The notes below the pieces were generated by a model. The model did not search any database and was not told the origin of the DNA. It saw nothing but the letters and a program-made list of their open reading frames with translations. A stretch of 64,000 nt of DNA from contig JALMLS010000332.1 of the NCBI GenBank assembly GCA_038496445.1, positions 186,001 through 250,000 of the forward strand, read 5' to 3'. Made by a program: the position numbers and the translations under genes. The stretch comes from Trichosphaerium sp. ATCC 40318 (taxonomy: Eukaryota; Protista; Tubulinea). Of this stretch, positions 14,436 to 62,117 are shown piece by piece (position 1 is the stretch's first letter; every line of letters starts with the position of its first letter).

Positions 14436-14565
14436 GCCGAACCTTCGGGAAGGCAATGTTAAAATTGGAACTATACTGAGAAGATTAGCATGGCCCCTTG
14501 TGAAAGGATGTTTTCGGTACTACTTTGGTGGAAGCTGTAAACAGCATCCTGACAAACTTTCTTTG
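14436..14565 (+). ncRNA. U6: U6 snRNA variant (ACUGAGA box, divergent 3' domain); 3' end uncertain
   Basis: 5' stem-loop with C-UUCG-G; AAAATTGGAACtATACtGAGAAGATTAGCATGGCCCCTtgtgaAAGGATG matches the U6 core (AGC triad 14487-14489, ISL). Confidence 0.85.
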
Positions 14566-15821: not shown

Positions 15822-16941
15822 TCATTTTAATTCTTCTTTTAGCTCCCCATTAATGAAATTACTATGGCCACACAATTCCCCATTGTCATGCCATATTTTG
15901 TATTCGCCTTCAAGTTTACCATTGATGTAATAACACTGCTCTTCCAATTGTCCATCGTCATACCTTTTCTTGTATTCTCCTTCTCTCTTGCCATTAATGT
16001 AATTACACTGCTCTTCCAATTGCCCATTGTCATACCATTTTTTGTATTCTCCTTCAAGCTTACCATCGATGTAATTACACTGCTCTTCCAATTGGCCATT
16101 GTCATGCCATCTCTTGCATTCTCCCTCAAGTTTATCATTGATGTAATTATACTGATCCCACATTTGGCCATTGTAATTCCAATTCTTGTATTCTCCGTTA
16201 AGTTCACCACCGATGTAATTACCATGGCTACATAATTGGCCATTGTCATGCCACCTCTTGTATTCTCCTTCTCTCTTATTGTTGATGTAATTACACTGAT
16301 CCCTCATTTGGCCATTGTAGTGCCAATTCTTGTATTCTCCTTCAAGTTCATCACTGATGTAATTACCATGGCTACGCAATTGGCCATTGTCATGCCATCT
16401 CTTGTATTCTCCTTCTTGTTTACCATTGATGTAATTGCTATTACTCTCTAATTGGCCATTGTAATTCCAATTCTTGTATTCTCCTTCAAGTTCATCACTG
16501 ATGTAATTACCATGGCTACGCAATTGGCCATTGTCATGCCATATTTTGTACTCGCCTTCAAGTTTACCATTGATGTAATTACACTGCTCTTCCAATCGGC
16601 CATTGCGATACCATTTAAGATATTCTCCATCTTGTACACCGTGCTTCCAGTAGGTTTGCTCTACAAGCTTGTTATTGATTTGTAGCTGCCATTTTCCATG
16701 CTTGTTCATCTCACTATCAAACCTTGTGGTTGTTGCCGCCTGTTTCGAAGTAAGCGGCCAAATTAAATACACGAATGAGTCCAAATCGATAATATCAAGT
16801 TGAATCTCAACTGGAAGGTCTAATAGACGACAATAGTCTGATTGCGCATTAAATCTCTACGTATTGGTTGTTAGGTAGTTCGTGTTGTTATTGTCAAGAT
16901 TATGATACCTTGTCTCCGTTAGTATTGCGATTAGTCAGCAT
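15822..16941 (-). CDS. F-box-like + MORN-variant (YwqK-type, 24-aa) repeat protein; short first exon 16909-16941
   Basis: Exon MLTNRNTNGDK splices in frame (gtatca...cgtag) to RFNAQSDYCRLLDLPVEIQLDIIDL, followed by ~11 repeats of GEYKxWHDNGQLEEQCNYINGKLE. Confidence 0.8.
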
Positions 16942-17549: not shown

Positions 17550-18791
17550 ATGTTATTGGATATACCTATTGAGATTCTAGCTAGAATTTTAGAAAATACG
17601 ACAAAAGATCGATTTGCAGCTTGTCAAACATGTCGTCTCTTTTCTTCTATTATTCACGACATCATTGGATACAGTAGTATACGCATAAGAACAGAAGAAC
17701 AAGCAAAACAAGTTGTCAAACATAAAGGGATCATGAAACACACAAAAATCGAGTTAGTGAGTGATAGAGAAACCAAGTTTCCTTCTGACAAACTTCTCGA
17801 ACAATTCAAAGGAGTGCATAACATTGCTCTTTGCAGTAGTTTTGTATCAGCTGAAGGTATTAAATGGCTTGCTGGAGTGCACACTATTGACCTTTTTGAT
17901 TCTGATGTTGATGATCAATGTGTCCAATTACTTGCTGGCGTTCATGAAATTTGTCTTGGAAAAGCCAAGTACCGACTGGCAGATAAAGTGGTTATTAAAA
18001 GTATAAAAGTAGTTACAGATGAAGGTGTTAAAGCACTTGCTGGAGTCCACACAATTGATCTTCAATACACTCAAGTTACAGACGAAGGTGTACAAGCCCT
18101 TGCTGGGGTTCATTCAATTAATCTTAGTGGTACGCAAGTGACAGACGAAGGAGTTAAAGCGCTTGCCAGAGTGCATACTATTCAATTGAGTGAATGTTAT
18201 AATGTCACAGATGAAGGTATAAAAGCGCTTGCTGGAGTTCATGAAATTGACCTTTCCGTATGTCCTAAAGTGACAGTTGAAGGTATTAGAGCACTCGCTG
18301 GCGTGCATACAATTGACCTCAGCTACACACATGTAACTGATGAAGTGCTTCAAAGTCTTGTTGGTGTACACACAATTAACCTCATTGGTAGTACAAATCG
18401 TATTACTATTGATGGAATCAAGGCGCTCAAAGATGTTCACAAGATTGAACTTTCTGATCCAAAGGATTTGTGGCTTAAACAACTTTGCAATGTGCACACA
18501 GTTTATATTTATGCACGTACCAATACAACCGATGATGGTATCAAAGCGTTGATAAATGTCAAATGCCTTCATCTGCTTAATTGCCCTAAGATATCAGACT
18601 TGGGTCTGAAGACATTAGTCAACCTTGAACATCTCTCGCTTGGGGGATGTTCGAAGATAACAAATGATTGTTTGAAACATCTTAAATCTCTGAAAAGTGT
18701 TACTATTACATTTATGATTTCTAAAGTAACAAAAGAGGCTGTTGAATCATTGGGTATTCAGTATATTAAGTTTTCTTTTGCAAGGAAGTGA
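17550..18791 (+). CDS. F-box/LRR protein (intronless)
   Basis: N-terminal LLDIPIEILARIL...AACQTCRLF; LRRs LAGVHTIDLxxTxVTDEGVKA. Confidence 0.88.
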   Translation: MLLDIPIEILARILENTTKDRFAACQTCRLFSSIIHDIIGYSSIRIRTEEQAKQVVKHKGIMKHTKIELVSDRETKFPSDKLLEQFKGVHNIALCSSFVSAEGIKWLAGVHTIDLFDSDVDDQCVQLLAGVHEICLGKAKYRLADKVVIKSIKVVTDEGVKALAGVHTIDLQYTQVTDEGVQALAGVHSINLSGTQVTDEGVKALARVHTIQLSECYNVTDEGIKALAGVHEIDLSVCPKVTVEGIRALAGVHTIDLSYTHVTDEVLQSLVGVHTINLIGSTNRITIDGIKALKDVHKIELSDPKDLWLKQLCNVHTVYIYARTNTTDDGIKALINVKCLHLLNCPKISDLGLKTLVNLEHLSLGGCSKITNDCLKHLKSLKSVTITFMISKVTKEAVESLGIQYIKFSFARK

Positions 18792-23967: not shown

Positions 23968-25131
23968 ATGAACCGAAATAGTGCATTCTTTGATGAAATC
24001 CCAGTTGAAATCATTGTACACATTCTACGCTTCATTTCAGTGGAAGCTACACAGACGGTTGCGCTTACATCGAAACTATTATTAAATACCGCTATAAATC
24101 ACTTTGGATATGAATACAACACTGCTCGAACCATAAGCATCGGAACGCAGGAAGAGCTCAAAAAACTGTATCACCAAGCACCACTTCTCATTAAAAAACA
24201 TAATCTTTATGTTAGTTTCAAACTCAAACAAAAGCACTTAAAGTACCTTAAAGGAGCATTTCATCTTACAATATGTGACCTGGGTGCTGTTAATTTTAGT
24301 GGATTTAAGGCAAACAGCATTGATTTCAGCATGTGTTGTTATAATGTTGCTGATAAACATGTTAAGCACCTTGCTGGAACTCAAAAGATTGATCTTTCGC
24401 ACACATCAATAACAGATAAGGCGATCAAGGCGTTGGCTGGAGTTCATACAATCTGCTTGAAGGGTTGTAGTGTTATAACTGATAAGGGTATTAAAGCATT
24501 GGCTGGAGTTCATACAATCTGCTTAAAGGGTTGTAGTGGTATAACTGATAAGGGTATTAAGGCATTGGCTGGAGTTCATACAATTAACCTTTATAATACA
24601 AAAGTAACAGATGAAGGTGTTAAGGCATTGGCTGGTGTTCATAAAATCAATCTTGCTAGTACAAAAGTAACAGACAAAGGTGTTAAAGCATTAGCTGGGG
24701 TGCATACAATTGATCTGACCAATTTGGAGATTACGGATGAGGGTATTAAAGCGTTGGCTGGTGTACACACAATTGATCTTGGAAACACTACAGTATCAGA
24801 TGAAGGTGTTAAAGCATTAGCTGGAGTTCACAGTATCGGCTTGTATTTATGCGTAAATGTTACAGATGATGGTATTAAGGCATTGGCTGGAGTTCATACA
24901 ATCGACCTTCATTGTACAAAAGTTACAGATGACGGTGTTGAGGCATTGGCTGGCGTTCATACAATTGACCTTGCTCATACAAAAGTAACAGACAAAGGTA
25001 TTAAGGCAATCTATGGTGTTCATACAATTAACCTTGAAGGCAAAATTAGCAAAAATAGAACACGAAGCGAGATTAAAGCATTATCTGGTGCTCATAATAC
25101 TGTTTTTTGTTATTGTATAGATTTCGCATAA
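23968..25131 (+). CDS. F-box/LRR protein (intronless)
   Basis: FDEIPVEIIVHILRFI...VALTSK F-box-like; ~11 LAGVHTIxL LRRs. Confidence 0.88.
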   Translation: MNRNSAFFDEIPVEIIVHILRFISVEATQTVALTSKLLLNTAINHFGYEYNTARTISIGTQEELKKLYHQAPLLIKKHNLYVSFKLKQKHLKYLKGAFHLTICDLGAVNFSGFKANSIDFSMCCYNVADKHVKHLAGTQKIDLSHTSITDKAIKALAGVHTICLKGCSVITDKGIKALAGVHTICLKGCSGITDKGIKALAGVHTINLYNTKVTDEGVKALAGVHKINLASTKVTDKGVKALAGVHTIDLTNLEITDEGIKALAGVHTIDLGNTTVSDEGVKALAGVHSIGLYLCVNVTDDGIKALAGVHTIDLHCTKVTDDGVEALAGVHTIDLAHTKVTDKGIKAIYGVHTINLEGKISKNRTRSEIKALSGAHNTVFCYCIDFA

Positions 25132-36206: not shown

Positions 36207-37433
36207 ATGGAACCAAATACCTTCACTCCTTTCTGTAAAGTACCGAAAACAACATCGAACTGGCTTACAACTCCACCAAAAGCTGCAAAGTGGATAGGTG
36301 AGTGCGTCACAGTCTGTAGTTGCTAAATAGAGCGTAGTAACCGAGAAAATTCATGGTGCTAATTTCTGCTTTATATCGGACGGTTCTATCATCACTTGCG
36401 CTAAAAGGACTGGATTGCTTGAACCTGGCGATAATTTCTTTGGCTATAAGGTATTTCCTTTACTTGATGACGCGTTAACATTCGCAGAGCGTTTTAAAGT
36501 CCCTTGAGACTAAAATAGGAGAATTACACGTTGTTGTGGCTAAAAAATACAACGCAACTCGTTTATTCGTTTACGGTACAGTGAAAACGCTTTAAAACGA
36601 CTGATTATAGCGTAGGAGAGTTGTTTGGTGGAGAATACCCTCATCCAAATGTGACACCTGACACTTCTGTGGAGGCCGTTCAAACTGGCATTTATTACTC
36701 TCCTAACATCGAATTTTGTGCTTTTGATATTGCAATTGAAGGCTCTGATGGTATTCACAAGTACCTTGATTTTGAGGTTTCTCTTGCTCTTTTTAAACAA
36801 GTTGGTATTCTCTACTCTGTACCACTATTCACTGGAACATATGAAGCAACTCTTAACTACAATATCAAATTCGAGTCTACAATTCCGAAACTATTGGATT
36901 TACCGCCTCTACCTTCGGGTAATTTGGCAGAAGGTGTTGTTATAAAACCAGCAAAGGAGGTTATAGTAAAAACAAAACGTGGCACAACAAGGGCAATAGT
37001 AAAAAGGAAAATTGATGAGTTTTCTGAAAAAAAATATAGTCAAGCTAAAAAGCCTTCATCGTCAATTGATGGACATGTCAAAATGTCTTGTTGTGATTTA
37101 CTAAAATTAGAAATATCATATTATATTACAGATGCGAGAGTACAGACTGCTATTTCAAAACTAGGTAAGTGTATTTATGATCAGGCTAGGAAGTAACAAA
37201 AGTTTTGATTTTTTTTTCTTCAAGGTAGGATTAAACGTGGAGATAGATCAAAGGTTAGGCAAGTTCTATTTCCTTATTATGTTGGTGATGTATTGGATTC
37301 ATTAAGAGAAGATAATGAGGGTGAGTGGGATAATCTAACATTAAAGGATAAGAGTGACTTAAAGGAAGAAACAGAAAAGCTTACAAAAGAGTTTTTAACT
37401 TCACATTTCAATAACTTATGGTCTCGAAAGTAG
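36207..37433 (+). CDS. RNA ligase 2 (T4 Rnl2/RNA-editing-ligase family), multi-exon
   Basis: Motif I TEKIHGANF, AKRTG, YGELFGG, YSPNIEFCAFDI, AEGVVIKP, IVKRK. Confidence 0.9.
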
Positions 37434-42841: not shown

Positions 42842-44842
42842 ATGAAGGTTTTGGTTAACGGGCGCTTACTTGTTAGCCGTTATAGCTCAATTGGCGCTCA
42901 TAGGCGTAAACGTGCGGGTTACCGCATTATAACACAACGCATAACTAGATTTTACTCCAATCAACGCATTCTGTAAGTTATCATCTCCAATATGTTATTA
43001 ATAGTGTTAGAAACGCTCAAAGGTCCCAGGTGAACGTACTAAGCGAAAAATTGCGTGTCACACACCTTGATGGGTTTTATAAGCATTGTATGCACGATCT
43101 TCGACTAGCAGGTAATCCGTTATTCGTACAACAAGGGTACAGGCACTTTTACGTTTGCTCAAAGCTAAAATTGAACAGCGTTTACAACACACTTTATAAC
43201 TGTCTAGTCACGTTATTTCCAGCTCATAAATGGCTCGCATGGAATTTCAAGTACAGAAAACGGCTTTGTCATGCATGAAAGGATCTAACTTTTTTGTAAA
43301 AAAAAAAGGACTATGCACGCTGGTGGTTGGGACGATATTGAAATGCAACGTAATTTTCTTGATTATATTGGGATGTACCTTGATATTCAAGATATGAGTG
43401 ATTGGTATCATTGTAATCATGAAGACATAATAGCTTTAGGAGGAGAGCATCTTTTAAAGAAAAGGTAAACTGATTTTTTGTTTGATTTTTCTTGTAATTT
43501 AGGCCGGTTTGCAATGGTTATTTATTACCCTTAGCTACGATGGATCATTTACAAAGATGCTTGAAAGAGTATATCCTGATTTTAAATGGTTAACTACAAA
43601 GTTCACGTGCGTCATAAACACGAAAAAAATAAGAAAAGTATTTTTTATTATTGGCTTGTAACTTTTTGGATAGACATGCACCAAGGAGGTATTGGCATGA
43701 TATTAATAACCAAAGGGCTCAATTCAATAATATTGCAAAAAAATTAAATATAAAGCACTTAGATGACTGGTATAATGTACATAGAAGTAAAATTGGATAC
43801 AAGTTAGACTATGTGATAAGGTAACAATCCCAACTTGGAAATAGAAAAACTTTAACATTCTTTCTTCGTAGGAGATCTTCTAATCTCTATGAGTCTCTTT
43901 CTGGGTTATATCCAGAACATAATTGGGATCCTCTATCGTTTAGGTATGTACACATACTCTAGAAATATTTGTCTGACAATTCGTAGGTATGTAAGCGGAG
44001 TCAGCTGGCGAGATCGCAAAAGTGTAATATCATACTTAAAAAGTGAGTTGTATTTTTTTTTATCAGTTTGTTTATCAACATTTTTTTATAGAGCTGGCCG
44101 CAAGTCATGATATTTCCAACCCAGTTGAATGGTATAGGCTTAAATTAAGTATGCATAAACGTGGTTTATGGGCACTTAAAGTGATGTATCCAAACCACAA
44201 TTGGCAGTTTTCACACTTCAAAGCAAAAGGAAAGAAGTTCAAACAAATGTACAGCACAACTTAAAAAAGGTTTTTTCTTACAATTTTCTAGGCTTCTTTT
44301 AAGGCGTGTATGTGCTATATTTCCAAATGATATTGTTCAAGAAGAGCACGTACTTGGTCAACCACTTGCCAACCCAGAAATCTCGACAAGTGTCGCAACA
44401 CTTGATATTTATGTTCCGAGGCTTAGACTAGCTTTTGAATACCAAGGTTTTTTTAACTTTCTTATTCGTGAAAGTATAACTCACGCTTTTATCATCTAGG
44501 AGAGCAACATTACAGAGATATAAGATATTTTGGATCTGTTCAGGAACAGGAGCAAAGAGATAGAATAAAAGCTTCACTCTGTGCTTCCAACGGTTAGTTT
44601 TCTTTTTTTTTTTTTGAGGAATCGTTTTTTGGCTTATGTTTTTTTGAGGTATTATCCTTATTGCTGTACCTTATTGGTGGGATGGAAAAAAGTCTTCATT
44701 ACGTGCTACAATACAAATACATGCACCTCATATACGATTTCAAAAGAACGAGGAAATAGGAGTACCAGTGCGTGGTTTACGGCCAAAGAATAAGCGATAT
44801 TTTGTTGGTTTGCAAAGCATGGAAAGTCAAGCACTGTCATAG
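42842..44842 (+). CDS. Trp-rich tandem-repeat protein with C-terminal PD-(D/E)XK/RAP-like nuclease domain (paralog 1), multi-exon
   Basis: Arg-rich N-terminus; repeats such as YWHDINNQRAQFNNIAKKLNIKHLDDWYNV...YPEHNW; LDIYVPRLRLAFEYQGEQHY...RDRIKASLCASNGIILIAVPYWWDG. Confidence 0.75.
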
Positions 44843-44947
44843 ATAAGAAAGTGTCAAGATAAATTGTAAATAACTCAAAGAACTACCAATATGTATTATA
44901 AGCCCTATCACTGATTCTAGTCCAGTAGTCCAAACCAAGAAAAAGTC

Positions 44948-46525
44948 ATGACCAGTTTGAATAAAATTGACGTAATTTTTTTTTTATGTTTTCTTCGGAT
45001 TCTGTTGCTCTAGATGGATCAATCGATCTCAGAACTCGCTGTTGATATTCTAAAGACAACTGATGCTGCTGAAAAGGCATTAAATATTTATTTCGTTTCA
45101 TCTACAAGCTTATTAACGCTAATAGGCTTCAAAAACGCTTGAAGTAGCTAAAAAATGGCAAGAAGGAGTTATTACCAAACTAGGGGAATGTATGCCTCCA
45201 GATCTTCCAGGACGTACGCGCAATGAGCTCTTTAACCATTATAACGCATAACCTAACAGTGGAATTAGGTCCAAGTTACGTTAAAATTCTGACACCTGGT
45301 ACGCGACTGTAAAGCCCCAAAAATGACGTAATACGCAGGAGAAATGCCAAAACGAGGCAAAGGAGGAACATTGGTACGTTTTAAAGACATTGTAGTGTCA
45401 CAATTCTCAAACGCGCCTAAAACACTCAAGGAAAATAGAGCAGCAATGCTACACGCTCTAGTACACATTGGTAATGTTTTCTGGTATTTGGACTGAACAA
45501 TAGCTGACTTTTTTGTTCGTTCAGAGTCTATTGCTGTAGACCTGGCCTGGGACATTATAGCAAGGTTCGGTTCTTCAAATAATATGCCTAAAGAATTCTA
45601 TGATGATTTCGTTAAAGTTGCACAAGATGAAGCACGTGTACGTCGGTTGAAAACACGTTTTCGACAACAATTTTTTGTGCTCTTTTTTTTTTGATGTCTT
45701 TTGGCTATGAGAGCGCTTGACGCGCCTTTTCTTGTTCCCGAAGACGCGTAACGGTAGCTTGCATACTAGATTGGTTATTTTTCTCATAAGTCAACTTATT
45801 TTTGTTGATAGCACCACACAATGCTTCATTCTAGATTAAAGGAACTGGGATATAAGTACGGCGATTTACCTGGACATGATGGATTATGGGAAAGCGCATT
45901 AAAGACATCAAAGAGTTTATTAGCAAGACTTGCTATAGAACATATGGTACACGAAGCAAGTAAGTTCACAAAGGAGAAAGGAACAAAAACATCCAGCTGA
46001 TATAAATTTTTTTCAAAGGAGGTTTGGATGTAACACCAAAGACCATAGAAAGGTACTACGTCCTCATATTTTTGTCTTGACACCCTTGCATTACACTACT
46101 TTATTGTTAATAGCACAAAAGGCAAAAACTACAGGCAGCACTCTAAGTTTTGAGATTTTTTTTGCCTTTTTTGGATATCTTTGTTTTTTCATTCTCTCTT
46201 GTAGGTTTAAATCAGCGGGTGATAAAAAGAGCGCTCTATTACTTGTTGATATATTAGAGGTATTATACATTTTAGCAAAAGGTAGATGTTAACGTTTTAC
46301 CGTGAATAGGAAGAAATCACACATGTTACAGTTGGTCAGAAATGGTTTAGTTACCAATGTAAACTAAATAACGAGGATCCTGTATCTACTTTTATAGATA
46401 TAGTACCTAAATACTTTCGTGGTGTTTTAAAACCACCCTTTAACAAACAAGCCCGTTTACAAGCCGGTATGACAGAAGAGTGGTACTTGCCTTTAACAAT
46501 AAAACCAAAAAAAAGTAGTAAATAA
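44948..46525 (+). CDS. Ferritin-like DUF455 family protein, multi-exon
   Basis: LHALVHIESIAVDLAWD, DEARH, YGDLPGHDGLWE, MVHEARGLDVTP, EEITHV..G.KWF, PPFNKQARLQAGM. Confidence 0.88.
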
Positions 46526-46689
46526 AACCTAAGTTTTGATAGCAACGTGAGAACCAACACAGCGATCGCTTTGTTTATGCGATGGGACCTTATTGAAGAA
46601 TAGGGTTTTGAGTTATTGGTTTTCAAAGTATTTGTTGAAGGTCTTTTTACATTTGTTGATTTTTTGCACCTACAGCGCCTCTTCTCTAT

Positions 46690-47542
46690 TTAGCGATGTT
46701 GTGGTATGTAGTTCGAGTTTTCTTCGTTCGTACGTCCGCACTTGTTTTGCAAAATAATCACGTGCAACTTAAATGTTAGGCACTTTTCGACGTTAGGCTT
46801 GCCAAGGCTGTTCCTATTGTAGGTTACAGTGCTATTCAGAATATTAATGCTACATTTTTACTAGTGGTTTTAAAAGTCTTGAGCCAAAAACTAATCCAGA
46901 GGTAACGGCATGTCTTTTTTTTTTTTCATTTTTTTGTACATTAGTTACAGCCGTTGTCCTCCTCATCCAAAACAAGGACGTAATTACATTATTTACATTA
47001 TATCCCATAAGATCCAGGTCCATTAAATAAAAAGAAATCGTCATCAAGGCGTTGGTTTTCTCCAGTTTTCGCTACAAATCGCGTACAAGAATTACATAAG
47101 GTACTTTAGAGACAGGAAAAAAAAGTTGTCTGTTATCGCTATTATTCTCTATTGAAAACACTAGTTGTAGCTTATCACCTTTATGTATAAGCGTATCATG
47201 TATAGGCGCTTCTATTTCTAATGTATATAGGTGCATAGGATCATCTAGTTCTATGATTATTGATTCATCTATTATTGAAGATAAAGAGCTATCAGGAGAA
47301 GTAATCTTACAGACATCAATGACCATTTTCATAGACTCCTCTGATGCTGCAACGCATACATATATTGTTATTGATGTATGCAGTTCACCTACTGTTTCAA
47401 ATAATGGAGTTTCAACTCTAAATACTTGAGCAACATAGCAGTCTAATGCAATATCTTCTTCATCTGTATCAGACGAAGATAGTTTTTTTTTGATACTTTT
47501 TATATTACTGCTACTACCGTCCTTGTTGTTTTTTGGTTCCAT
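46690..47542 (-). CDS. Hypothetical protein; 3' exons approximate
   Basis: Long first exon MEPKNNKDG... (~145 aa) ending at a GT donor, followed by an open second exon. Confidence 0.55.
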
Positions 47543-48285
47543 AAACTTTTTCTGTTTCTTGTAATATATCTTTATACGAGATGCAGCGCATAAGATTGTA
47601 TCGAAAAAAAAATGTTGTGTGACGCAAAATTGTTGCGCGGATTTTTGTGTCACACAATCAAGATATCAAAACAACGCTTAAACGCTCTATACACGATCAA
47701 AAGATAGTTTTAAAGCATATATAAGCATTTTAAACGACTTCTCGTCCTTTCAGAGTACAATCTTTCAGAAAACGCGAAAATCGGTTTTCAACGCCGAAGT
47801 ACAGATGTACGCTTTATTTTTGATTCTTTTCCGAGAACGCTTTTCAGAACAGCCGAAAATTTTTCAGTCTGGTTACGTTAATCAGAAATTTCCCAGTTTT
47901 CTTTGAAAACTTTTTTGGATTCGGTTTTCTGACTTTTCAATTGAAATCTTTATTATTCTGTCTCTTGTAAAGTTGTTACTATTGGTTTTCATTATGAGTT
48001 CAGTAATTTCTGTCAACCACAGGTTTTTTTGAACGTCAGATTTTCGTCATCAAATTTGTTTTTTTGTTGAATCTTGTTCAAGAAATTTAAGGCTTCAGCG
48101 AGCTCATAAACGCTGATTTACCATGCCCTTGTACTGAATCATGTTTCTCGTACTACAGGCGATGTTATTCTGATACTCTTCTTTCTTTTCGACCTTGGAA
48201 AAATCATTGCACTAGGAAGCAGTCGCTTCTCTTGCATAGTCAGCGCTGACTCATCATTCTTTGTACGGTTGATTCTAAATGTTGT

Positions 48286-50580
48286 TTACGTTGTTACTTT
48301 ATAATCGAAAGGAGACATTGTGTTGAAGCCACCTATACATAGAATTTAGCGTAATGGCTTGCTAATAATTGGTTTCGGTATTGAAAAAAAAAACTCTGAC
48401 AAAACAATACCTTGCTGTGAGATACAAGACCCAAGAGGCTCCACATGAGGCGGTGAGCGTAAAGGTATTGAAGGTACATAATGCTTGATAGTCGCTATTA
48501 TACTTTCCACGTCACCTCTCCACCAGTACGGTATCAGAACTAGCTCGACACCTTTTTTAAAAATCATATTAGTGATTTTGTTGGTCTATTTTTTCTTTTC
48601 GAACGGACCTGACTCCTTGCATTGTATAATCTTTTCATTATCTCTAGCATGCTGTACATTAACAGGAAATCTTCCAAACAGATTATCATGATAATGTTGT
48701 TCACCTATTTAAGCAACGGTGTCAATAAGCAAAAGGTAAAAAAAAGGTGTCTTACCTTCATATTCAATAGCGATATTAAAATCTGGAAGATAAATATCAA
48801 CTGTCATCCAAATATCAGTAGATCCTTTCAATCCAATAAAATGTTCTTCTACTATATGTGCAGAGGGGAATATATCCTTAATACAATGAACCAATCGCCT
48901 AGAAGAACGTTTAAGTACTGAGAAAGCGCAATATGTGCTAAGAAAAAAAGGGTCCCAAAATCTGAGAGAGCACGCACAGTTGCTTTGTTCGTTTCCCCAT
49001 CCATGGAAATTTCAACCAATGCCACTCATAGTTATTTGATAAAAGGTTAAGAGCTTGAGGGTAGTGCTTTAAGAATCCATTGCCTCCCAGTTTGCTTATT
49101 TGTGATTTTGAAATCCGATACCTTATATGCCTATCAGAAAAAAAAAGTATCAAGCAGTCATGTACCAAGAATCCAAAGTTGTTAGTCCTAGCTCTCGTCC
49201 AACCATTTCAAGGAATCCTCTTTGGTTTCTTGAATCTTCCCAGTATTCAGTAGATCTCATAGGTGCTCGAGAATCGTCCTTAAATAATGTAGAGATCAAG
49301 CGTTCCACAGAGTGATACCTTTCATCAAATTACATTACTTGGTTAAATATGCTTTCCTACGTACTTTGTCATTAGCGCTTTTCCGCCATGCGCTACGATT
49401 TGTTCTAAGTGATTGGAATTCCAATCAGATACAATTTTTATATCTAACTGACAAGCTATTGAGTTGACTATATCTCTATGTCTTTGTTCTGCTTCTCTTT
49501 TCTCTGATTCCCTAAAATAAACTTTAGAGATGTTAGTCGTCCAATGACGTACATGAGTTCCCATCCTCTCCATAGCTTAAAAGGGTAAACTGCTTGTAAT
49601 GTCGTCAATAGAGAGCCATTATATCTTGTAGGCAAGATGAGGTAACAGCTAGCATTCATGTGTACTTACCTTGATAAAATCTGAGAACCTCCAAAACTGA
49701 TAACTTTATCACGTGTTGTGCTATGCCAGTCATCAAGTATACGTATTCCCAAGCTCCTTGCTATATCATTAAGTTTATTAACTTGATATTTTGGATCGCT
49801 GGCAAGCTCCATTTTGGCCATACTTGACAACAAGGGTAAGAAGAAGGAGTTTCCACTACAATACTTAATTAAGAAGTATGCGCACTTAAACTTCCAAGAT
49901 TGCCACCTGTGACTCGGGAAATGTGCATTTAGCATACGCATAATACTCCCTCCATGCCTATTAATATCATGCTGTTAGTACAAATAAAAAATAGCATGTT
50001 GTAATTACTTGGTGAGGAGTTGAGAATAGCCAAGATTTTGTAAATCTGTTTCTGTTAGAGAATGAAAGTCATCCATGATTTTGAACTTGAGGTGCTCGGC
50101 AATAGCATTATACTTCTCTGGAGTGCTTTTAGATATGCCTGGAACATATTCATCGCTATTAGACTTGCGACGTTTAACCCTGGCAGAAGTTTAGATGAGA
50201 ATTGTGACTTTTGATGTCATGGCTTACTTGAAGTGCCTTGTATCCCATTGAAATGCTGGAAATATGCGTTGAAGCGCAGCAGCAGTAGATCCACCGTATC
50301 TGATGAGATTGTTGGCGATTGTAAGTGTCAAAAAAATACGCACTTGTGTATTACGATGCTACCACCTCCAGCACGGCTAATATCATTCTTTCTGACTTTG
50401 TACCATGCGTCAAATGTTTTAACGTTTAGTTTAGGCGCAATTACAGAGTCAAAAAACTCTTTTTGATTGCTAACGCTGTTCCAGTGGCCTTTTTGCGTGT
50501 TGGCTAATATTACGAGTGTTAGCTGTTACTTTTATGGTATTTACTGCCTCAAACGCACCTACGGCTACACGTAATGCCAT
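48286..50580 (-). CDS. Trp-rich tandem-repeat protein with C-terminal PD-(D/E)XK/RAP-like nuclease domain (paralog 2), multi-exon
   Basis: GHWNSVSNQKEFFDSVIAPKLNVKTFDAWYKV..GGGSIVIHKYGGS..LQRIFPAFQW repeats; VDIYLPDFNIAIEYEGEQHY...RDNEKIIQC..GVELVLIPYWW. Confidence 0.78.
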
Positions 50581-50703
50581 TGGTACATTCCGTTGGTATT
50601 TTTATGCGACTTACATAATAATTAAGTCCAGTTTCCGTTACACTTTCGTTTTACGCCTAATCGCAACAAGTGGGGAGCCCAGGTTGTATTGTGGCTATAT
50701 TAT

Positions 50704-53202
50704 ATGGCAACAGTACGTAGAACGATTAGAAAATCACAATTGGCCTCAAGAAAAGTACATGCGTCGTTAGAATACAAAAAACGTGTCGTTGACGCCAAAA
50801 TTGCTCCAAACATACCAGTATTTACACGTTGCGATTGGTTAGATGTCACACGCGAACAATTCGCCTCTGTTGGAGGTAGAAAGCTGTTGCGGTACAAATA
50901 ATATCGGTTTTATGTCACAATAATACTAAAAGTGTAACAGGGGCTCTAAATCTCTCATGAGACTGTTAAAAACGATATATCCGAGCGAGGAATGGCTACC
51001 TTGGAAGTTTACGTACGTTTGTGAGTAATCAAATGTGGCCCAACTGACACTTTACTAAAAACAGTTCTCGTCCCAACTTTTTGGACGATATAAAGCATCA
51101 AAGAGTTCTAGTCGATCACATCGGAATGTCATTAGAAATAAATGATCTGAGTGGTTGGTACGACATCTCTTGGAAGGATGTATACGCACATGGGGGTACA
51201 CGTGTCTTACAAAGGTAAATAAACAAGAAATTTGTTGGGTTCTTTTTTTTTTTGAGCTCTTTCAAAAAATGTTGACGTCATTGTTCGGTAGGTACAACAA
51301 TTCTTTGCATACCATGCTACAGACGTTGTATCCGTGGTTTGACTGGATTCCTTGGCAATTTCAGTACGTGTTTAATTGTCTTGTGATACAACTTTAAATT
51401 GAGATGAATACTAATTAATTCCCGTCAGGAAAGCTCCATTGAACTGCTGGAAGAATGTTCAAAACCAGAGGAATAAATTTGAAGAGATTGCGAGTTTATT
51501 AGATGTTAAGTGTCTTAGTGATTGCTATAATATTACAGCAGTGCTTATAACAAATAATGGAGGAGGAGGGATTATGGAATGGTACGTCAAAAAAAAAACT
51601 ATGTGCAAGTTTTCTTGTTTGCTTCCTTTAGATTTTTCCCTCTATTTTTCATCAAGATGAAGTGCAATGTTAATGTTAATTATTAAGGCACAACAGTAAC
51701 ATGTTATCATGTCTGCAAACTATATATCCTCAATACCCATGGGACCCTGAAAAATTACCGTAAGGAACTTCTATTTCTTTTTTTCCCTTTTGAAAAAAAA
51801 GTAGTTGTTTCTAATCTCTATCGCTTTTAGTCGTATGCCTATGAAATTTTGGGATAATGTAGATAATATCAGGGATAAATTAAACTACAGAGCGAAATTA
51901 CTAAATATTAAAACACAAGAGTGTTGGAAGGCCGTAACTATCAAGTAATCTCTTTTCTTTTTAAAATACATTGTTTTGTGATTTCTTTTGTTCGTAAGCT
52001 TGCATCTAGTTAATCACGCTTTTTAGAGATTTTGGAGATAGTTGTAAAAGTTTATTGTACAAGCACGTGGAGATTATTTCAAATGCGAAACTAAGCTATT
52101 TTTAGATTCAACAACTCAATGTCTAATATCCTCCTTGCTGCTTACGGTATGGACACCAGCATGAGAGCGAATGGGTTTTGGAAGGAAGAAAGTAATCAAA
52201 TAGAGTTTTTGCGTAGTGCAGCAAACTTGCTTTCGATTGAAACCGCTGAGGAATGGTAGGTTTTAAATGGCCTTTTTTATTTGTTGTATTTCTTTTTCAC
52301 ATTTTTTGTGGTGTAGGTACCACGTTTCTGGCTCTCAACTGTTGGCGTTAAACGGAGGAGGTATTCTAAAATATTACCCACATGTTCTTCGGGTATGGGA
52401 TCCTTCTATAGTGTGGGACTGGAAGCGTTTCACTCATGGTATTAAAAAAGCACAACAAAGAACGCTAACAACGCAAATTAATGACTTGTTTACAACACTT
52501 CAATGCGTACCACTACGGCTAGAAGGTTTACTGAAGTAACCGCATTAATGTCGCATACATACGCGAAAAAATCAGCTGTGACACATTGTTGACTTGAACC
52601 ACGAGTTGTACGTTTTGACTAGCAAGGTACAAACGATTTTTTTAAATGTAACGAATCCAGATTTTTTTGCTTTTTGTTTGATTTTGGTTTAGATCGCGTT
52701 CTGGTGGCCTTGTTTTCTTCACTGAAGAAATTTATGGCTTTAGAGTTTGTAACGAAGTGTATATACCGAGCGCGGCGGTTCGTAGTATTGACTATACACG
52801 AGGTTTCAATGCCGGAGAAAGAATTGTGCCGCAACTCAATGGTTTGTGAAATGGCATCAACGCACGTTTTCTCCGTTAATAGTTACGCTTACAGATGCTA
52901 GACTCAATAAAACCCAAGCGCATACCTCCGGTGAAGCCGTTATTTCACTCCGCAAAGAAACTAAAAATGCGCTAGTTGCGGTAAAGTAATTGTTAACATC
53001 AACATGTTGAGTCACTTTAAACAACACAACTTGTTTTAAAGAGTTTTGCGCGTAGTATTATGACACACTGCATATACATCAAGAAAGCACGATGTATAGA
53101 TCTCTTGGTGTCAGTGAGACTGAGCAGTATAGCCATTTGTATACTGCAGTTCGTTCAACCAGGCAAAAATACAAAAAAAAACTACTGTTAGCAAATAAAT
53201 AG
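50704..53202 (+). CDS. Trp-rich tandem-repeat protein (paralog 3) with degenerate nuclease-like C-terminus, multi-exon; 3' exons approximate
   Basis: MATVRRTIRKSQLASRKVHAS presequence-like; repeats FWTDIKHQRVLVDHIGMSLEINDLSGWY...YNNSLHTMLQTLYPWFDWIPWQF; C-terminal EVYIPSAAVRSIDY. Confidence 0.7.
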
Positions 53203-56414: not shown

Positions 56415-57992
56415 ATGGAACATGAACTTAGCAATACAAGTATACAACAAACGAAATACAGTCCCGATGGTTACTTATTAGACCTCCTTGCGCTACCAGT
56501 CGAGATTATAGTACAAATTCTTAAATACGGGAGGTTTAGGCACCGTTCAGCCCAAACATGCCATTTCATGCTCGAGATAGTTCAAAACCACGTCGGCTAT
56601 GATAAAATTGAAATCTCAAGCGAAAACGAGTTGAAAAAGCTCTCTGGTAGCGCTTTGCTTCAGAATACTCCTATTTATTTAGATGTTCTTAGAAAAACGC
56701 TTACTGATAGTCACTTGAGCCTTCTTGCAGGTGTACACACTATCTACTTGAATAAATTCAAATTGATAACAGATGATGGCATCAAAGCTTTGGCTGGTGT
56801 ACACACAATTATCTTAGATGAAACAAATGTTACTGATGAAGGTCTGAAAGCGCTATCAGGTGTACATACTATTGGTTTGTTATTCTGCAAGTTAATTACA
56901 GATGAAGGTATAAAGGCATTGTCAGGTGTACATGAAATAGATCTAGAAGAGACATCTGTGACTGATGAAGGTTTAAAGTCACTAGCAGGAGTACATGCTA
57001 TCAACTTGGATTATTGTTCATCAATAACCGATGAAGGTGTCACTGAACTGGCAGGTGTACACACAATAAGTTTAAAAGAAACCAATATAACATATAAAGG
57101 TTTTAAGGCTTTAGCAGGAGTTCACTCTATCTCCTTGGAGAATTCATTGATAACTGATGAAGGCATCAAGGCTTTATATGGTGTACACACAATCGCTTTA
57201 GAAGGAACTAAAGTGACTGATGATAGTTTAAAGTTATTGGCAGACAGCGTACATGTTATTTGCTTGAACAGTTGTGACTTGATAACAAATGAGGGTATCA
57301 AGTTATTGGCTGGTGTTCATACGGTTAATTTGAGCAATACCGCGGTAACTGATGAGGGTATCAAGGCGTTGGCTGGAGTACATACAATAGCTTTAAAATA
57401 TACTAAGGTAACTGATGAGGGAATCAAGGCGCTTTCGGGGGTTCACACAATTGACCTGGCATTTTGTGAAACAATTACAGATGAGGGTATCAAGTCATTG
57501 GCGGGTGCATATTGTGTTGATATAGCTTGTACAAATGTAACAGATGAAGGTGTAAAGGCATTGGCTGGTGTTTATCACATTGATTTATCAAGTACAAATG
57601 TCACTGATGAAGGCTTGAAGGCATTGGCTGGAGTACACACTATTTATTTAGAAAGGTGTATGTCAATAACAAGTGATGGTATTGCAGCATTGGTGGGTGT
57701 ACATGAGATAGATTTATCAAATACAAATGTAACAGATGAAGGTTTAAAGGCATTGGTAGGAGTAAACAACATCCATTTACGCTTTTGTAAATCAATAACA
57801 GATGAGGGTATCAAGTCATTGGCGGGTGCATATCGTGTTGATATAGCTTGTACAAATGTAACAGATGAAGGTTTAAAGGCATTGGTAGGAGTAAAACACA
57901 TCCATTTAGAATATTGTATCCACAAAAAAACTGAGATTGCACTACCGCAACTCTTTAATGCTGTAAAGTCACTATCTGGTGTACTTGTTTAG
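56415..57992 (+). CDS. F-box/LRR protein (intronless, ~18 LRRs)
   Basis: LLALPVEIIVQILKY..SAQTCHFM; LAGVHTIxLxxTxVTDEGxKA repeats. Confidence 0.88.
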   Translation: MEHELSNTSIQQTKYSPDGYLLDLLALPVEIIVQILKYGRFRHRSAQTCHFMLEIVQNHVGYDKIEISSENELKKLSGSALLQNTPIYLDVLRKTLTDSHLSLLAGVHTIYLNKFKLITDDGIKALAGVHTIILDETNVTDEGLKALSGVHTIGLLFCKLITDEGIKALSGVHEIDLEETSVTDEGLKSLAGVHAINLDYCSSITDEGVTELAGVHTISLKETNITYKGFKALAGVHSISLENSLITDEGIKALYGVHTIALEGTKVTDDSLKLLADSVHVICLNSCDLITNEGIKLLAGVHTVNLSNTAVTDEGIKALAGVHTIALKYTKVTDEGIKALSGVHTIDLAFCETITDEGIKSLAGAYCVDIACTNVTDEGVKALAGVYHIDLSSTNVTDEGLKALAGVHTIYLERCMSITSDGIAALVGVHEIDLSNTNVTDEGLKALVGVNNIHLRFCKSITDEGIKSLAGAYRVDIACTNVTDEGLKALVGVKHIHLEYCIHKKTEIALPQLFNAVKSLSGVLV

Positions 57993-58843: not shown

Positions 58844-61800
58844 TTAATCAAGACCGTAGATTTCGCCTGTTTCAAAATCAATATCCATATCGAAAAACTT
58901 TGGACGTGTAGGAAGACCTAATAAGAACAAGTATTAGAAAAATACAGAGGGAAAAAGAGTTGAGTAAAAAGAAACATACCTGGCATTGTTGATATGTTAC
59001 CGAGAAGAGGGTACACAAAACCAGCACCTACAGATGCTCTAATATCTCTAATTGGTACTGTAAATCCTGTTGGTGCTCCTTTTAATGATGCATCATGAGA
59101 AAGGGACAAGTGAGTTTTTGCCATGCAAATAGGAAGATTTCCGAATCCCTGTAAAAAAACTCATTAAAAACCGTCCAAGAAAAAAAAAAAAGAGAATCAA
59201 AAACAACCACGAAAATATGCTGAACTGCTCAGTGTTGCTGAACTAAAACAACAAGGCAGACAAAAAAAAACCATTAATCATCTTTATCAACAAATTTCGT
59301 ATCACGTGATTTTTGTTGTTGTGCAAAATAAACCTAAGCGAATCCATGTTCACCATAACTAGTTATGGTACTGGGATCTATTTCGCTATGATTTATTCTA
59401 CTCTATTAATTCTCACGTGATTTTTTATGAAAACACGTGTGGTGAAACAAAAAAAATAAAATAAAAACGTGTTAAGTACCTGAGCTTCAAATTCTTTAAT
59501 TTTTTCTTCAGCTAGTGGTTCGTAGGAAACACCATCAGCGCCATAGATTTCTTTGCAAATAGTTTCAATCTTTTCTTTGATTGTTTTTTCAAGAGGATAC
59601 AAAAACTTGAATGTATTGCCTGCTTTCTTGTTCGCTTCACATGCTTCATGTACAGACTTGGCTAGGTCAATGGCACCAGCGCCACCTATTAGAACCTTGA
59701 GGAAACAAGATACTTGAAGTTTCTACGCAGTTTCATCCACAAAGATATTTCTTACCTTTCGCCCAGTGTTCAGCTACTACAGCGTCTTCTGCTCCTGCTT
59801 CTTTTGCTAAGCGTTTGACAAGCTCAATTTCTTCATCAGAATCAGTAAGGAACCTATAAAAAAGATATCAATATTGAGCGATCCTTGGTCAGTCATTATA
59901 AACAACGTACTTGTTGATTGCTACAATTACAGCAACACCAAACTTTTTACAGTTTTGGATATGTTTAATTAGATTAGCACAGCCAGCCTCTACAAGTTCT
60001 ACATGTGGTTCAACATATTCCTTTGCAAGTGTGCGTCCAGGTGTAACCTTAGGACCACCACCTATAGCGACGATTAGCTGTAAAGTCGAAAAATAACTTG
60101 ACAAGAAAATTAAAACGTACCATGCATCTTCAAAGCTCTTACAGTAGCAACAATAACAGCACAGTTAGGTACTAATCCACTGTATCTGCATTTAATATTG
60201 AAGAACTTTTCGGCACCAATATCAGCACCAAAACCAGCTTCTGTTACTACAACACCATCTTCACCAACAAGTTTCAAAGCGACCTAAAACAAATAACCAT
60301 CAGCACTTTTTTCTTTTTCTGAAGTTCATCCAAACAGTTTTCGTTTCGCCCTTACCTTATCAGCTACTATGGAGCTGTTTCCGTGTGCGATATTAGCGAA
60401 TGGACCAGCATGAACAAATACAGGTGTTCCCTAAATGGTTAGATTGAGCATAAAGCAAATGGTAGAGAACTAAACATACCTCCAAAGTTTGCATAAGGTT
60501 AGGATCAACAGTGTCTACAAAAAAAATAGGGTGAGAAAAACATTCTTTTTTTGTTCAGCTATTTACCCTTCATAAGAATTGTTAATGCTCCGGCTACACC
60601 TAAATCTTCAGCTGTTATAGGCTCGCCTTCACTATAACCAATATCAGTATAAAACAAAGGCAGGCGACTGAAAAAAGCAGACAGACAAAGAAGAAGAGAA
60701 AGTGTGACACTTTTTTTTAAAGGCTTGTTTTTGTTGCTCTTGAAGTACGTACGTGCTGAAAGCTACCACCATTTCGCCAAGACGTTTTCTCATATCTTTT
60801 AGACTTGTGGTCAATGCTAATATAGCCATAATCTCAGAAGCAACAGAGATGTCAAAATTTGTTTCGCGAGTACGACCCTTTTCAGTCTTGCTTTGTCCTA
60901 CTGTGATTTTACGTAAATATCTGTCGTTACAGTCAACGACGCGGTTCCAAAGGATCTTGTCTTTATCAATATTCAAGCGAGCAAACCTATTACATAATTA
61001 ACAGACAGTACTACGACAAACGAGACAAGTCAATCTGCTTTTAAAAAATGCTCAAAAAAAAAAAGTACTTTTTGACTTCTTCGTCAGTGAGATCCTCAGG
61101 TACGGTCTTTTCAATACCAAGCTTTTTAAGACGTGTCAACATAATCCTTGAAAAGCTTCTCTTTTGTGTCTTAGAATTTTTTGGGCACAACCTAAATAAT
61201 TAATGTCAAAATGTGTTTACAGCTTTTTTTTTTTTGGTTTTATCTTAGAAACCAAACAAACAGATAACGTACCTGTTGAATAAAGCTCTATCGGATTTTG
61301 TAATTGACTCGTGCATGTATCTAACAACGTAAGAAACAGAACAGGTAGCAAGAAGCAGTACAAGACGACTGAGAACGGAAAAAAATGCTCGGTGAAAATA
61401 TCTTACCTTGCGTCTAAAGCAGCCGCCAATAGGTTATTAGCTGCAGAAATAGCATGAATATCGCCTGTAAGGTGCAAGTTGAAATCTAGATGGTAAGTCA
61501 GGTTTTTGACACTCAAACCTGAAAAAAATATGTTTCCTCACCTTCCATTGGGATAACTTGAGCGTAACCACCGCCAGCAGCACCGCCTGTAGCGTTTATG
61601 TTAATTGTTTATTTAAAATTAAGAGTTTATTGCCTTTAATGCCGAAAGTTGGGCCCTGGCTAGGCTGGCGTATGCATGCGAACGACTTCTTGCCGAAATG
61701 AGCGCCTGAATGAAGTGAGAAGCGATGAGAATAGATAAATGTACCTAGAGCCTGTACTAAGCCTACAACAGTAGTAGATTTGCCTTCTCCGAGCGGTGTA

Positions 61801-62117
61801 GGTGTGATTCCAGTGACTACAACGTAATGGCCATTCTTGACGTCTTTTAAGCGATCCAATACGCTCAGTGACACTTTAGCCTTCAGTTTACCATACTGTT
61901 CAACTTCGTCATCAAGTAAACCAAGAGCACTTGTAATGTCTGTAATAGGCAAAGGTTTTACGCTATGACTAATAACCAAGTCGTGAGGAGGTGGAGAGAC
62001 AATGTTGGTGAGTTTATTGGCTGTTGCGTAACTCATCTTCGCTTTTGTGGAACGAGACTTCAAAGTAATTCTTGTTCGTGTGGAATATTGGCGTTGTGTG
62101 AAAATTTTTCGGATCAT
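58844..62117 (-). CDS. Formate-tetrahydrofolate ligase (monofunctional), multi-exon; second in-frame ATG at 62036
   Basis: [83 protein letters not shown]. Confidence 0.95.

Follow-up and report, generated by a model that had tools for sequence, protein, structure and literature searches.

Introduction

Joining an array of helical repeats to a nuclease is how organelles and genome engineers direct enzymes to chosen sequences. FASTK, HPR-RAP and OPR-RAP proteins form nuclear multigene families and consist of a presequence, a helical array and a C-terminal Vsr-like domain, and modular arrays also deliver the nucleases of PPR-SMR proteins, PPR-NYN proteins (PRORP) and engineered TALE nucleases. 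Here we describe three genes of similar concept, g1, g2 and g3, located at positions 42842-53202 of a 64,000-nucleotide stretch of Trichosphaerium sp. ATCC 40318 DNA (GenBank assembly GCA_038496445.1, contig JALMLS010000332.1, positions 186,001 to 250,000, forward strand), hereafter the window. g1 and g2 encode tandem Trp-rich units followed by a predicted Vsr-type PD-(D/E)XK domain, and our favoured reading, held with moderate confidence, is that they are modular guided endonucleases with g3 as a nuclease-less paralogue, that many members of the family, g1 included, are probably mitochondrial, and that DNA is somewhat likelier than RNA as the target.

Repeat arrays

Splice models of the three genes were curated by hand with the repeat register as a guide (Table 1), and they confirm the three paralogs within about 10 kb noted in an initial annotation of the window: g1 (+), g2 (-) and g3 (+). 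The introns have GT-AG ends and CTAAC-like branch sites (all GT-AG and 32-70 nt in g1, whose reading frame is open; GT-AG and 35-79 nt in g2), and because so many short introns interrupt the genes, a bacterial-style listing of open reading frames (ORFs) in 42842-53202 holds only fragments. Pairwise identity among g1-g3 is 25-34%, and by sequence comparison they are old paralogues.

A profile of the repeat unit, built nearly entirely from proteins of other organisms, matches exons of g1-g3 in six-frame translation with E-values down to 4e-16, and the rest of the 64 kb has no match below E=0.05 in the same search. Four units were counted in g1 and five each in g2 and g3, in place of the five to six per paralog first reported; the first and last units of g1 (g1R1 and g1R4) are degenerate. 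The family period, taken as the mode of about 1,000 unit spacings, is 75 amino acids (aa) and not 65-70 aa, the 69-aa string in the initial annotation being the conserved core of the unit, and the repeat consensus given there agrees with that of the family, vPkGYWkDieNQReFLDwLAkkLGIkslEDWYkVtkkDIikNGGsGLLkkYnnSLskALksIYPEHpWkpWKF (929 units). Trp accounts for 2.8-4.4% of residues in the repeat proteins, which are basic (net charge +15 to +34).

Units are 11-40% identical to one another, with variability spread across many positions. The arrays of g1-g3 are collinear: the most similar units are those at matching positions (g1R2-g3R2 40%, g1R3-g3R3 33%, g2R5-g3R5 33%), and position-matched units resemble each other across paralogues more than neighbouring units do, which suggests that each array position has its own role. 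A four-residue deletion and a shifted intron are common to the terminal units of the paralogues. Introns in the repeat region are all in phase 2, and the eight 72-nt exons that they flank encode the second half of the unit (Y..S....L..iYP...W..wkF); together with the phase-1 intron sites that g1 and g2 share in the nuclease domain, this pattern indicates that a symmetric module of two exons was duplicated to make the array, and that the genes themselves duplicated later.

Modelled by AlphaFold2 from a 59-sequence alignment, three units are entirely helical, each with five helices (predicted local distance difference test, pLDDT, 93; predicted template modelling score, pTM, 0.70). The two halves of the unit are unrelated by hhalign (E 0.17-0.56) and thus are not paired PPR-, HPR- or OPR-like hairpins; an internal duplication of the PPR/HPR-like kind (2 x 37 aa) was rejected by this half-against-half comparison. 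PPR, TPR, OPR and HPR families are absent from the Pfam matches of the 59 segments and from the fold matches. Scattered sub-threshold Pfam matches (SAM_TNK in 10 of 59 segments, Myb_Rap1 in 8, TagF_N in 12) and low-probability Foldseek matches of the unit to SAM domains were obtained, and no likeness to SAM, Myb or helix-hairpin-helix domains is claimed. The unit is separate from those of PPR, OPR, HPR and TALE proteins, as the idea of an independent, longer-repeat class had anticipated.

The remote relatives of the unit are bacterial DUF4046 proteins, a lead that was already in the initial annotation and that holds as distant homology. A tblastn search of plasmids with P0160, a bacterial family member described below, found DUF4046 proteins of Bacillus thuringiensis, B. 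cereus and B. mycoides (E down to 2e-13), with alignments confined to the repeat region and covering 45-82% of the length of P0160. A three-unit profile aligned by hhalign to WP_061139957.1 with 96.6% probability (E 5e-10, 170 columns in register), and each Bacillus DUF4046 protein has 6-8 units to which the whole length of the unit profile can be aligned. Protist proteins do not reach the Pfam DUF4046 cut-off (PF13255, 22.8 bits), the best scoring 12.5 bits (P0202, positions 13-87 of 90), and PF13255 matched one of the 59 segments at E 1.2e-4. These plasmid-encoded proteins, the sole annotated relatives of the protist repeat, include those at L164 4716-6608 (B. thuringiensis MC28 plasmid pMC95) and L165 4773-6251 (B. 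thuringiensis c25 plasmid), both with near-identical 75-aa units; on pMC95 the gene lies amid insertion sequence (IS) elements and genes annotated as pesticidal crystal (cry) proteins.

Predicted C-terminal nuclease domain

g1 and g2 continue past the array into a domain with four motifs, all of which are present in both (Table 1); two phase-1 introns lie at identical sites within it. In an alignment of 32 homologous domains, mutually 29-51% identical, D42, P46, E53, Y54, G56, H59, P94, W96 and W97 are invariant and D76, K79 and C83 are kept in at least 90%, and g1 and g2 retain all of these residues. That Asp, Glu and His do not vary at such low identity speaks for a functional active site.

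Database homologues served for the structure and family tests, and the results were transferred to g1 and g2 by alignment. The domain modelled was that of the Cavostelium homologue P0020 (residues 405-544), 40% identical to g1 and 34% to g2; the AlphaFold2 model (pLDDT 88) has the order helix, three strands, helix, strand, helix (H-E-E-E-H-E-H). The top Foldseek matches in the PDB are 1vsr, 4oq2, 3hrl, 3r3p and 1cw0 (probability 0.96-1.0, template modelling score, TM, 0.39-0.55, but weak E-values of 0.009-0.08), including Vsr (1vsr/1cw0; probability 0.97-1.0, TM 0.51-0.55) and I-Bth0305I (3r3p; probability 0.97), and 1cw0, 3hrl and 3r3p are structures listed under VSR/DUF559/DUF2726 in a survey of PD-(D/E)XK proteins (PMC3424549). 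Further fold matches are PvuRts1I, AbaSI, the DUF559 protein 3hrl, R2 and TnsA nucleases, and several Toxoplasma mitoribosome RAP-type proteins; over the full set of matches the probability is 0.9-1.0 and TM 0.4-0.55. The restriction-endonuclease fold first proposed for the C-terminus is thus supported, as a Vsr-type PD-(D/E)XK fold modelled on a homologue, with its catalytic residues kept.

Against PDB sequences the nuclease profile found AbaSI alone (E 0.26, aligned at the catalytic motif), and tblastn against GenBank phages found proteins annotated as EDxHD homing endonuclease, group I intron protein, homing nuclease and intron-encoded nuclease (E 1e-6 to 3e-4; phage homing endonucleases 1e-6 to 6e-5). 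Pfam DUF2726 (PF10881, cut-off 24.7 bits) scored 29.6 bits on homologue P0033 and 12-20 bits on P0020, P0019 and six others; the exon pieces of g1 and g2 have no Pfam match because introns split the domains. Membership of the RAP family, to which the initial annotation had compared the domain, was not supported by Pfam: RAP (PF08373), FAST_1 and FAST_2 gave no match at E up to 1 on g1/g2-type C-terminal domains and none at E up to 0.01 on whole homologues.

A stand-alone PYWW-type domain, named for the last of the four motifs, is widespread, with 277 loci in prokaryotic species-representative genomes and at least 355 in IMG/VR, and these prokaryotic and viral copies follow other N-terminal modules. 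One such copy, in a metagenome-assembled genome (MAG) of a Poseidoniaceae archaeon (L004 4885-6342), stands after five DUF4379 treble-clef zinc-finger repeats, so this nuclease has been paired in nature with at least two unrelated repeat arrays. In the domain tree, all 47 repeat-bearing protist-type copies form one group (Shimodaira-Hasegawa-like approximate likelihood ratio test, SH-aLRT, 89), nested in a set (SH-aLRT 97) that includes both repeat-bearing bacterial proteins, and g1 and g2 are mutual nearest neighbours.

A nuclease had been proposed for all three paralogs; motifs and profile uphold it in g1 and g2, and g3 has no profile match. Past its last unit the g3 product has only a short tail (KKAQQRTLTTQINDLF...), similar to the opening helix of the nuclease domain. 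Six-frame searches with the PYWW-type profile and with a second, WHG-type profile (below), all HMMER filters off, gave nothing at E<1 from 52539 downstream to 53400, by which a hidden nuclease of either type 3' of g3 was rejected over that span. g3 may be a nuclease-less paralogue, like roughly 30% of homologues, or a decaying copy.

Family members and fusions

Of 1.84 billion 50%-identity representatives, 4,648 proteins matched a profile of the first exon of the unit at E<=0.001, and for 318 the E-value was below 1e-30. Amoebozoan members come from Cavostelium (at least 20 distinct), Nematostelium, Physarum and Pyxidicula, and others from Heterolobosea sp. BB2, MMETSP transcripts and many soil and water metagenome contigs; a 2.66-Mb contig with two members is eukaryotic in gene content. 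The g1/g2-type nuclease is present in about 70% of 243 fetched homologues; counted over 239 fetched homologues, 162 have it C-terminal to 3-25 units. The biggest member seen, P0001 (2124 aa, on a 1.37-Mb ENA contig), has 25 consecutive units and then one nuclease domain. All members are named 'hypothetical protein' in their source records, no Pfam or NCBIfam family matches them, and precomputed database annotations place PF13255 on about 15 of 120 listed homologues. Literature on DUF4046, RAP/Vsr helical repeats, amoebozoan ligases and helical repeat proteins of Amoebozoa and Heterolobosea yielded no account of the family, in keeping with the statement in the initial annotation that no functional description was known.

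Six members (P0158, P0163, P0175, P0177, P0196 and P0214) carry, in their C-terminal 120-140 aa, a second Vsr-type domain in place of the PYWW type, with a WHG signature (ADGY...IYEFhGDyWHGnP...GY.lv.iWEsdW). The catalytic motifs of the two profiles align in register, weakly (hhalign E 0.002, probability 12%), and the WHG-type tail of P0175 has sub-threshold matches to Pfam RAP (19.7 bits, cut-off 24.2) and MTES_1575. An ATP-dependent DNA ligase follows the nuclease in at least six members: P0195 (Physarum), P0161, P0080 (Cavostelium), P0057, P0127 and P0145. The ligase of Physarum P0195 scores 151 bits to NCBIfam PRK09125, and the N-terminus of this protein is presequence-like.

Two members are genuinely bacterial, both from MAGs, and the repeat alone occurs on Bacillus plasmids; the family is therefore not limited to organelle-bearing cells, as the initial view of an organellar family would have had it. 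P0160 (MBI2757063.1, L002 8001-10178, Chloroflexi MAG) has eight units and the nuclease and is encoded in a four-gene operon (L002 5920-13241), the first three genes of which overlap end to start. Its partners are a weakly GajB/UvrD-like 694-aa helicase-like protein, a UvrD-type helicase and a Cas4-like PD-(D/E)XK nuclease, and the operon looks like a DNA-repair or defence module; PADLOC has no system or family matching the repeat protein. The second, of 577 aa, has six units and the nuclease (Deltaproteobacteria MAG CSMAG_2928, L006 1792-3525) and adjoins a Schlafen AlbA_2/HATPase_c_4 gene, a sigma-54 response regulator and a histidine kinase. Repeats were found in none of 80 fetched viral loci, and together with the absence of a BFVD fold match this led us to reject a giant-virus origin of the repeats.

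Leaders

The acid-poor, presequence-like N-termini reported for paralogs 1 and 3 are as described, in the form of a 38-aa leader in g1 (Table 1) and a shorter one in g3. In 34% of the 101 homologues whose leader is 21 aa or longer, positions 2-21 hold no acidic and three or more basic residues, as against 4% in an unrelated LRR set and 3% in internal 20-mers of the family, and many of these leaders read as classical presequences. The presequence call is a test of composition; by this measure g1 at least is probably imported into mitochondria.

Genomic setting

The window (G+C about 36-37%) is eukaryotic nuclear DNA, as indicated by its short GT-AG introns and a U6 spliceosomal small nuclear RNA gene at 14442-14542 (+; RF00026, 50.4 bits), the single match in an Rfam scan of the 64 kb; a tRNA search of the window found none. 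Each of g1-g3 is a nuclear gene that stands free and is interrupted by 9-12 spliceosomal introns, and none lies within a group I intron, intein or mobile element. The sole non-GT intron of the three genes, in g3, has a GC donor (GCACGT...TAG) and was accepted because the unit reading ...SLLYK/FNNS... (slash at the splice) is otherwise out of register; it may be authentic, of the GC-AG type, or may indicate that g3 is decaying. g2 and g3 are transcribed divergently in the models, and the DNA that separates their start codons is a candidate shared promoter. Between g1 and g2 lie a DUF455 gene (about 45300-46520, +) and an ORF (47075-47665, -), and a protein kinase gene is found downstream of g3.

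Table 1. Features of the three repeat genes, in positions of the 64,000-nucleotide window
Feature	Position	Strand	Description	Basis
g1 gene	42842-44842	+	11 exons, 492 aa; leader, 4 Trp-rich units, Vsr-type nuclease domain	hand-curated
g1 exons	42842-42972, 43005-43250, 43309-43464, 43535-43606, 43674-43820, 43872-43943, 43987-44042, 44092-44248, 44292-44446, 44500-44592, 44649-44842	+		
g1 leader	42842-42955	+	aa 1-38; no Asp/Glu, 9 Arg/Lys, Ser-rich	read from sequence
g1 array	43012-44243	+	4 units, aa 47-128, 130-202, 201-276, 282-344	hmmsearch 19.5, 81.9, 71.2, 14.1 bits
g1 nuclease domain	44241-44749	+	aa 344-462	117.7 bits, E 3.5e-36 vs profile of 32 homologues
g1 nuclease motifs	44401-44418; 44434-44510; 44553-44570; 44669-44680	+	LDIYVP; FEYQG/EQH (split by intron at slash); QRDRIK; PYWW	
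g2 gene	48346-50580	-	13 exons, 539 aa; 5 Trp-rich units, Vsr-type nuclease domain	hand-curated
g2 exons	50559-50580, 50344-50503, 50228-50299, 50009-50179, 49886-49957, 49670-49822, 49553-49624, 49365-49511, 49166-49318, 48978-49130, 48756-48898, 48609-48704, 48346-48551	-		
g2 array	48989-50565	-	5 units, aa 6-93, 109-169, 174-248, 249-304, 312-388	83.5, 56.1, 58.6, 34.6, 51.6 bits
g2 nuclease domain	48466-48985	-	aa 390-500	95.0 bits, E 3.8e-29
g2 nuclease motifs	48784-48801; 48694-48768; 48631-48648; 48520-48531	-	VDIYLP; IEYEG/EQH; ARDNEK; PYWW	
g2/g3 spacer	50581-50703		123 bp between divergent start codons	model coordinates
g3 gene	50704-52539	+	10 exons, at least 409 aa; short basic leader, 5 Trp-rich units	hand-curated
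g3 exons	50704-50891, 50941-51012, 51065-51214, 51292-51363, 51429-51581, 51688-51759, 51831-51944, 52027-52062, 52106-52255, 52317-52539	+		
g3 array	within 50704-52539	+	5 units	46.8, 79.5, 71.1, 42.2, 44.2 bits
g3 GC-donor intron	52063-52105	+	43 nt	
72-nt exons (n=8)	43535-43606, 43872-43943, 50228-50299, 49886-49957, 49553-49624, 50941-51012, 51292-51363, 51688-51759		flanked by phase-2 introns	
Remainder of interval first annotated	52540-53202		no recognisable family domain	six-frame, both nuclease profiles and unit profile, nothing at E<1

Elsewhere in the window, four intron-less ORFs stand amid intron-rich genes (17550-18791, 23968-25131 and 56415-57992, +; 15822-16784, -) and encode one MORN_2 repeat protein and three LRR_6 proteins, of which one also has an F-box; this F-box/LRR protein has its best relatives in MMETSP transcripts (43% identity). 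Exon-sized ORFs at 36621-37196 (+) and 61596-62117 (-) match, listed in that order, Pfam RNA_ligase (PF09414, E 5e-8) and formate-tetrahydrofolate ligase (E 3e-33), and have no visible connection to the repeat genes.

Discussion

If g1 and g2 are modular guided endonucleases, the array of 75-residue, five-helix, Trp-cored units would select the target, most likely by binding nucleic acid along its length, and the Vsr-type PD-(D/E)XK domain would cut it by means of the Asp of D-I-Y-x-P, the Glu of E-Y-Q/E-G, the His of x-Q-H and the Asp/Lys of R-D-x-x-K. We infer that the array binds nucleic acid, that the domain is catalytically active and that many of the proteins work in mitochondria; the substrate is inferred as well, and here we lean towards DNA, with RNA a strong second. 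DNA is favoured by the homing-endonuclease relatives of the nuclease, the DNA-ligase fusions and the bacterial operon with its UvrD-type helicase and Cas4-like nuclease; RNA is supported by the FASTK/HPR-RAP/OPR-RAP-like design, the multigene family and the RAP proteins among the fold matches. Organellar RNA-binding families are usually multigene.

Several points weigh against reading g1 and g2 as guided endonucleases. For the array, the putative nucleic-acid-binding part, no similar fold was found in the PDB or BFVD (best E about 1-2, TM no higher than 0.25), a single-unit profile found no match among PDB sequences, and the DUF4046 relatives in bacteria are uncharacterised and lack a nuclease. 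The nuclease is absent from g3 and about 30% of homologues, its fold was modelled on a homologue 34-40% identical and not on the window proteins, and the Foldseek E-values for that model are weak (0.009-0.1). As to location, more than half of the fetched members have a short leader or none, partly from truncated metagenome gene calls, and g2 has just 8 residues ahead of its first unit. As to catalysis, PMC12687428 describes the related RAP and FASTK domains as RNA binders in many cases, with doubt as to which of them are catalytic.

A possible, tentatively held alternative is that g1-g3 are organellar RNA-processing or RNA-stabilising factors like FASTK, HPR-RAP and OPR-RAP proteins, in which the array would read a mitochondrial transcript and the Vsr-like domain would cleave or cap an RNA end. 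The concept of helical repeats with a Vsr-like domain is identical, the family is nuclear and multigene with at least 20 members in Cavostelium, leaders are presequence-like, RAP proteins of the Toxoplasma mitoribosome rank high among the structural matches, the WHG-type tail of P0175 weakly matches Pfam RAP at 19.7 bits, and FASTKD5 and FASTKD4 are reported to act on mitochondrial RNA. However, Pfam RAP, FAST_1 and FAST_2 miss the g1/g2-type proteins, the nearest sequence relatives of the nuclease are DNA homing endonucleases, the ligase fusions and the helicase/Cas4 operon point to DNA, and the bacterial members have no organelle.

The phage homing-endonuclease relatives can also be read in another direction, with the proteins as selfish or defence-type nucleases (domesticated homing or restriction-like) that act on nuclear, viral or foreign DNA and not in organelles; bacterial members beside helicase/Cas4-like or Schlafen AlbA_2 genes, repeat-only relatives on Bacillus plasmids near IS elements, and the abundance of the family in amoebae, which are hosts of giant viruses, are in its favour. 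We consider this unlikely, as g1-g3 are old paralogues and ordinary nuclear genes, rich in introns and with symmetric phase-2 exons, presequence-like leaders are enriched, the 80 viral loci hold no repeats and PADLOC has no matching family. Quite improbable, in our view, is that these are non-catalytic structural or adaptor proteins whose array binds protein or serves as a scaffold (for example in the mitoribosome or nucleoid) and whose nuclease fold is a relic. In favour of this, the nuclease is missing from g3, from about 30% of homologues and from all Bacillus DUF4046 proteins, Toxoplasma RAP proteins are constituents of the ribosome and the array has no known nucleic-acid-binding counterpart, but catalytic Asp, Glu and His are invariant among members only 29-51% identical, and the recurrent fusions are solely to nucleic-acid enzymes (two nuclease types and a ligase).

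The design of helical repeats with a PD-(D/E)XK domain is already known and the nuclease belongs to a known group, and the family itself appears undescribed in the sources searched. With thousands of clusters, no matching Pfam or NCBIfam family and no solved structural relative of its unit, it would add a further array-guided solution to those of organelles and genome engineers. Modular reading of nucleic acid by the units, if real, would open a new recognition code to testing, account for part of the machinery that maintains or expresses the mitochondrial genome in amoebae and heteroloboseans, and supply the bacterial DUF4046 proteins with a first functional hypothesis.

Compared with the Vsr/DUF559/DUF2726 group, which includes I-Bth0305I, the g1/g2-type domain has the predicted fold and the order of catalytic residues in common, but the family forms its own clade with the PYWW signature and most members fall under the Pfam cut-off. 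Unlike I-Bth0305I-type EDxHD enzymes, g1-g3 are nuclear genes with spliceosomal introns, are not borne by introns or inteins, and have a different targeting module. The 75-aa period of the unit is also that of DUF4046 proteins (PF13255; e.g. WP_061139957.1 and AFU17019.1, from B. cereus-group plasmids), as are P-x-x-F/Y-W at the start and S-P...Y-P-x-x-x-x-x-W-x-F at the end; unlike g1 and g2, the Bacillus proteins consist of repeats only, and their units lack the G-G turn and N-Q-R motif of the protist units.

In contrast to FASTK, HPR-RAP and OPR-RAP proteins (repeats of 37-38 aa, two helices), the unit here has 75 aa and five helices and the proteins have no Pfam RAP, FAST_1 or FAST_2 match, and those families lack the ligase fusions and bacterial members seen here. 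The same difference separates it from PPR, TPR, OPR and HPR units in general, which are 34-38 aa long and form two antiparallel helices. The repeat and nuclease folds of PPR-SMR proteins, PPR-NYN proteins and TALE nucleases are unrelated to those of g1 and g2, and any code in the present arrays is hypothetical. TALE repeats are near-identical, 33-35 aa long and have a two-residue variable site, whereas units of this family are 75 aa long and 11-40% identical. A bolder proposal, which we regard as doubtful, is that the 75-residue unit is a new modular nucleic-acid reader that contacts a fixed number of nucleotides per unit through a few variable surface positions, and that protists possess mitochondrion-targeted enzymes that cut (array and Vsr nuclease) and that cut and seal (with DNA ligase in addition); were this so, the family would stand beside PPR and TALE proteins as their independent counterpart, and its code would be open to deciphering and re-engineering.

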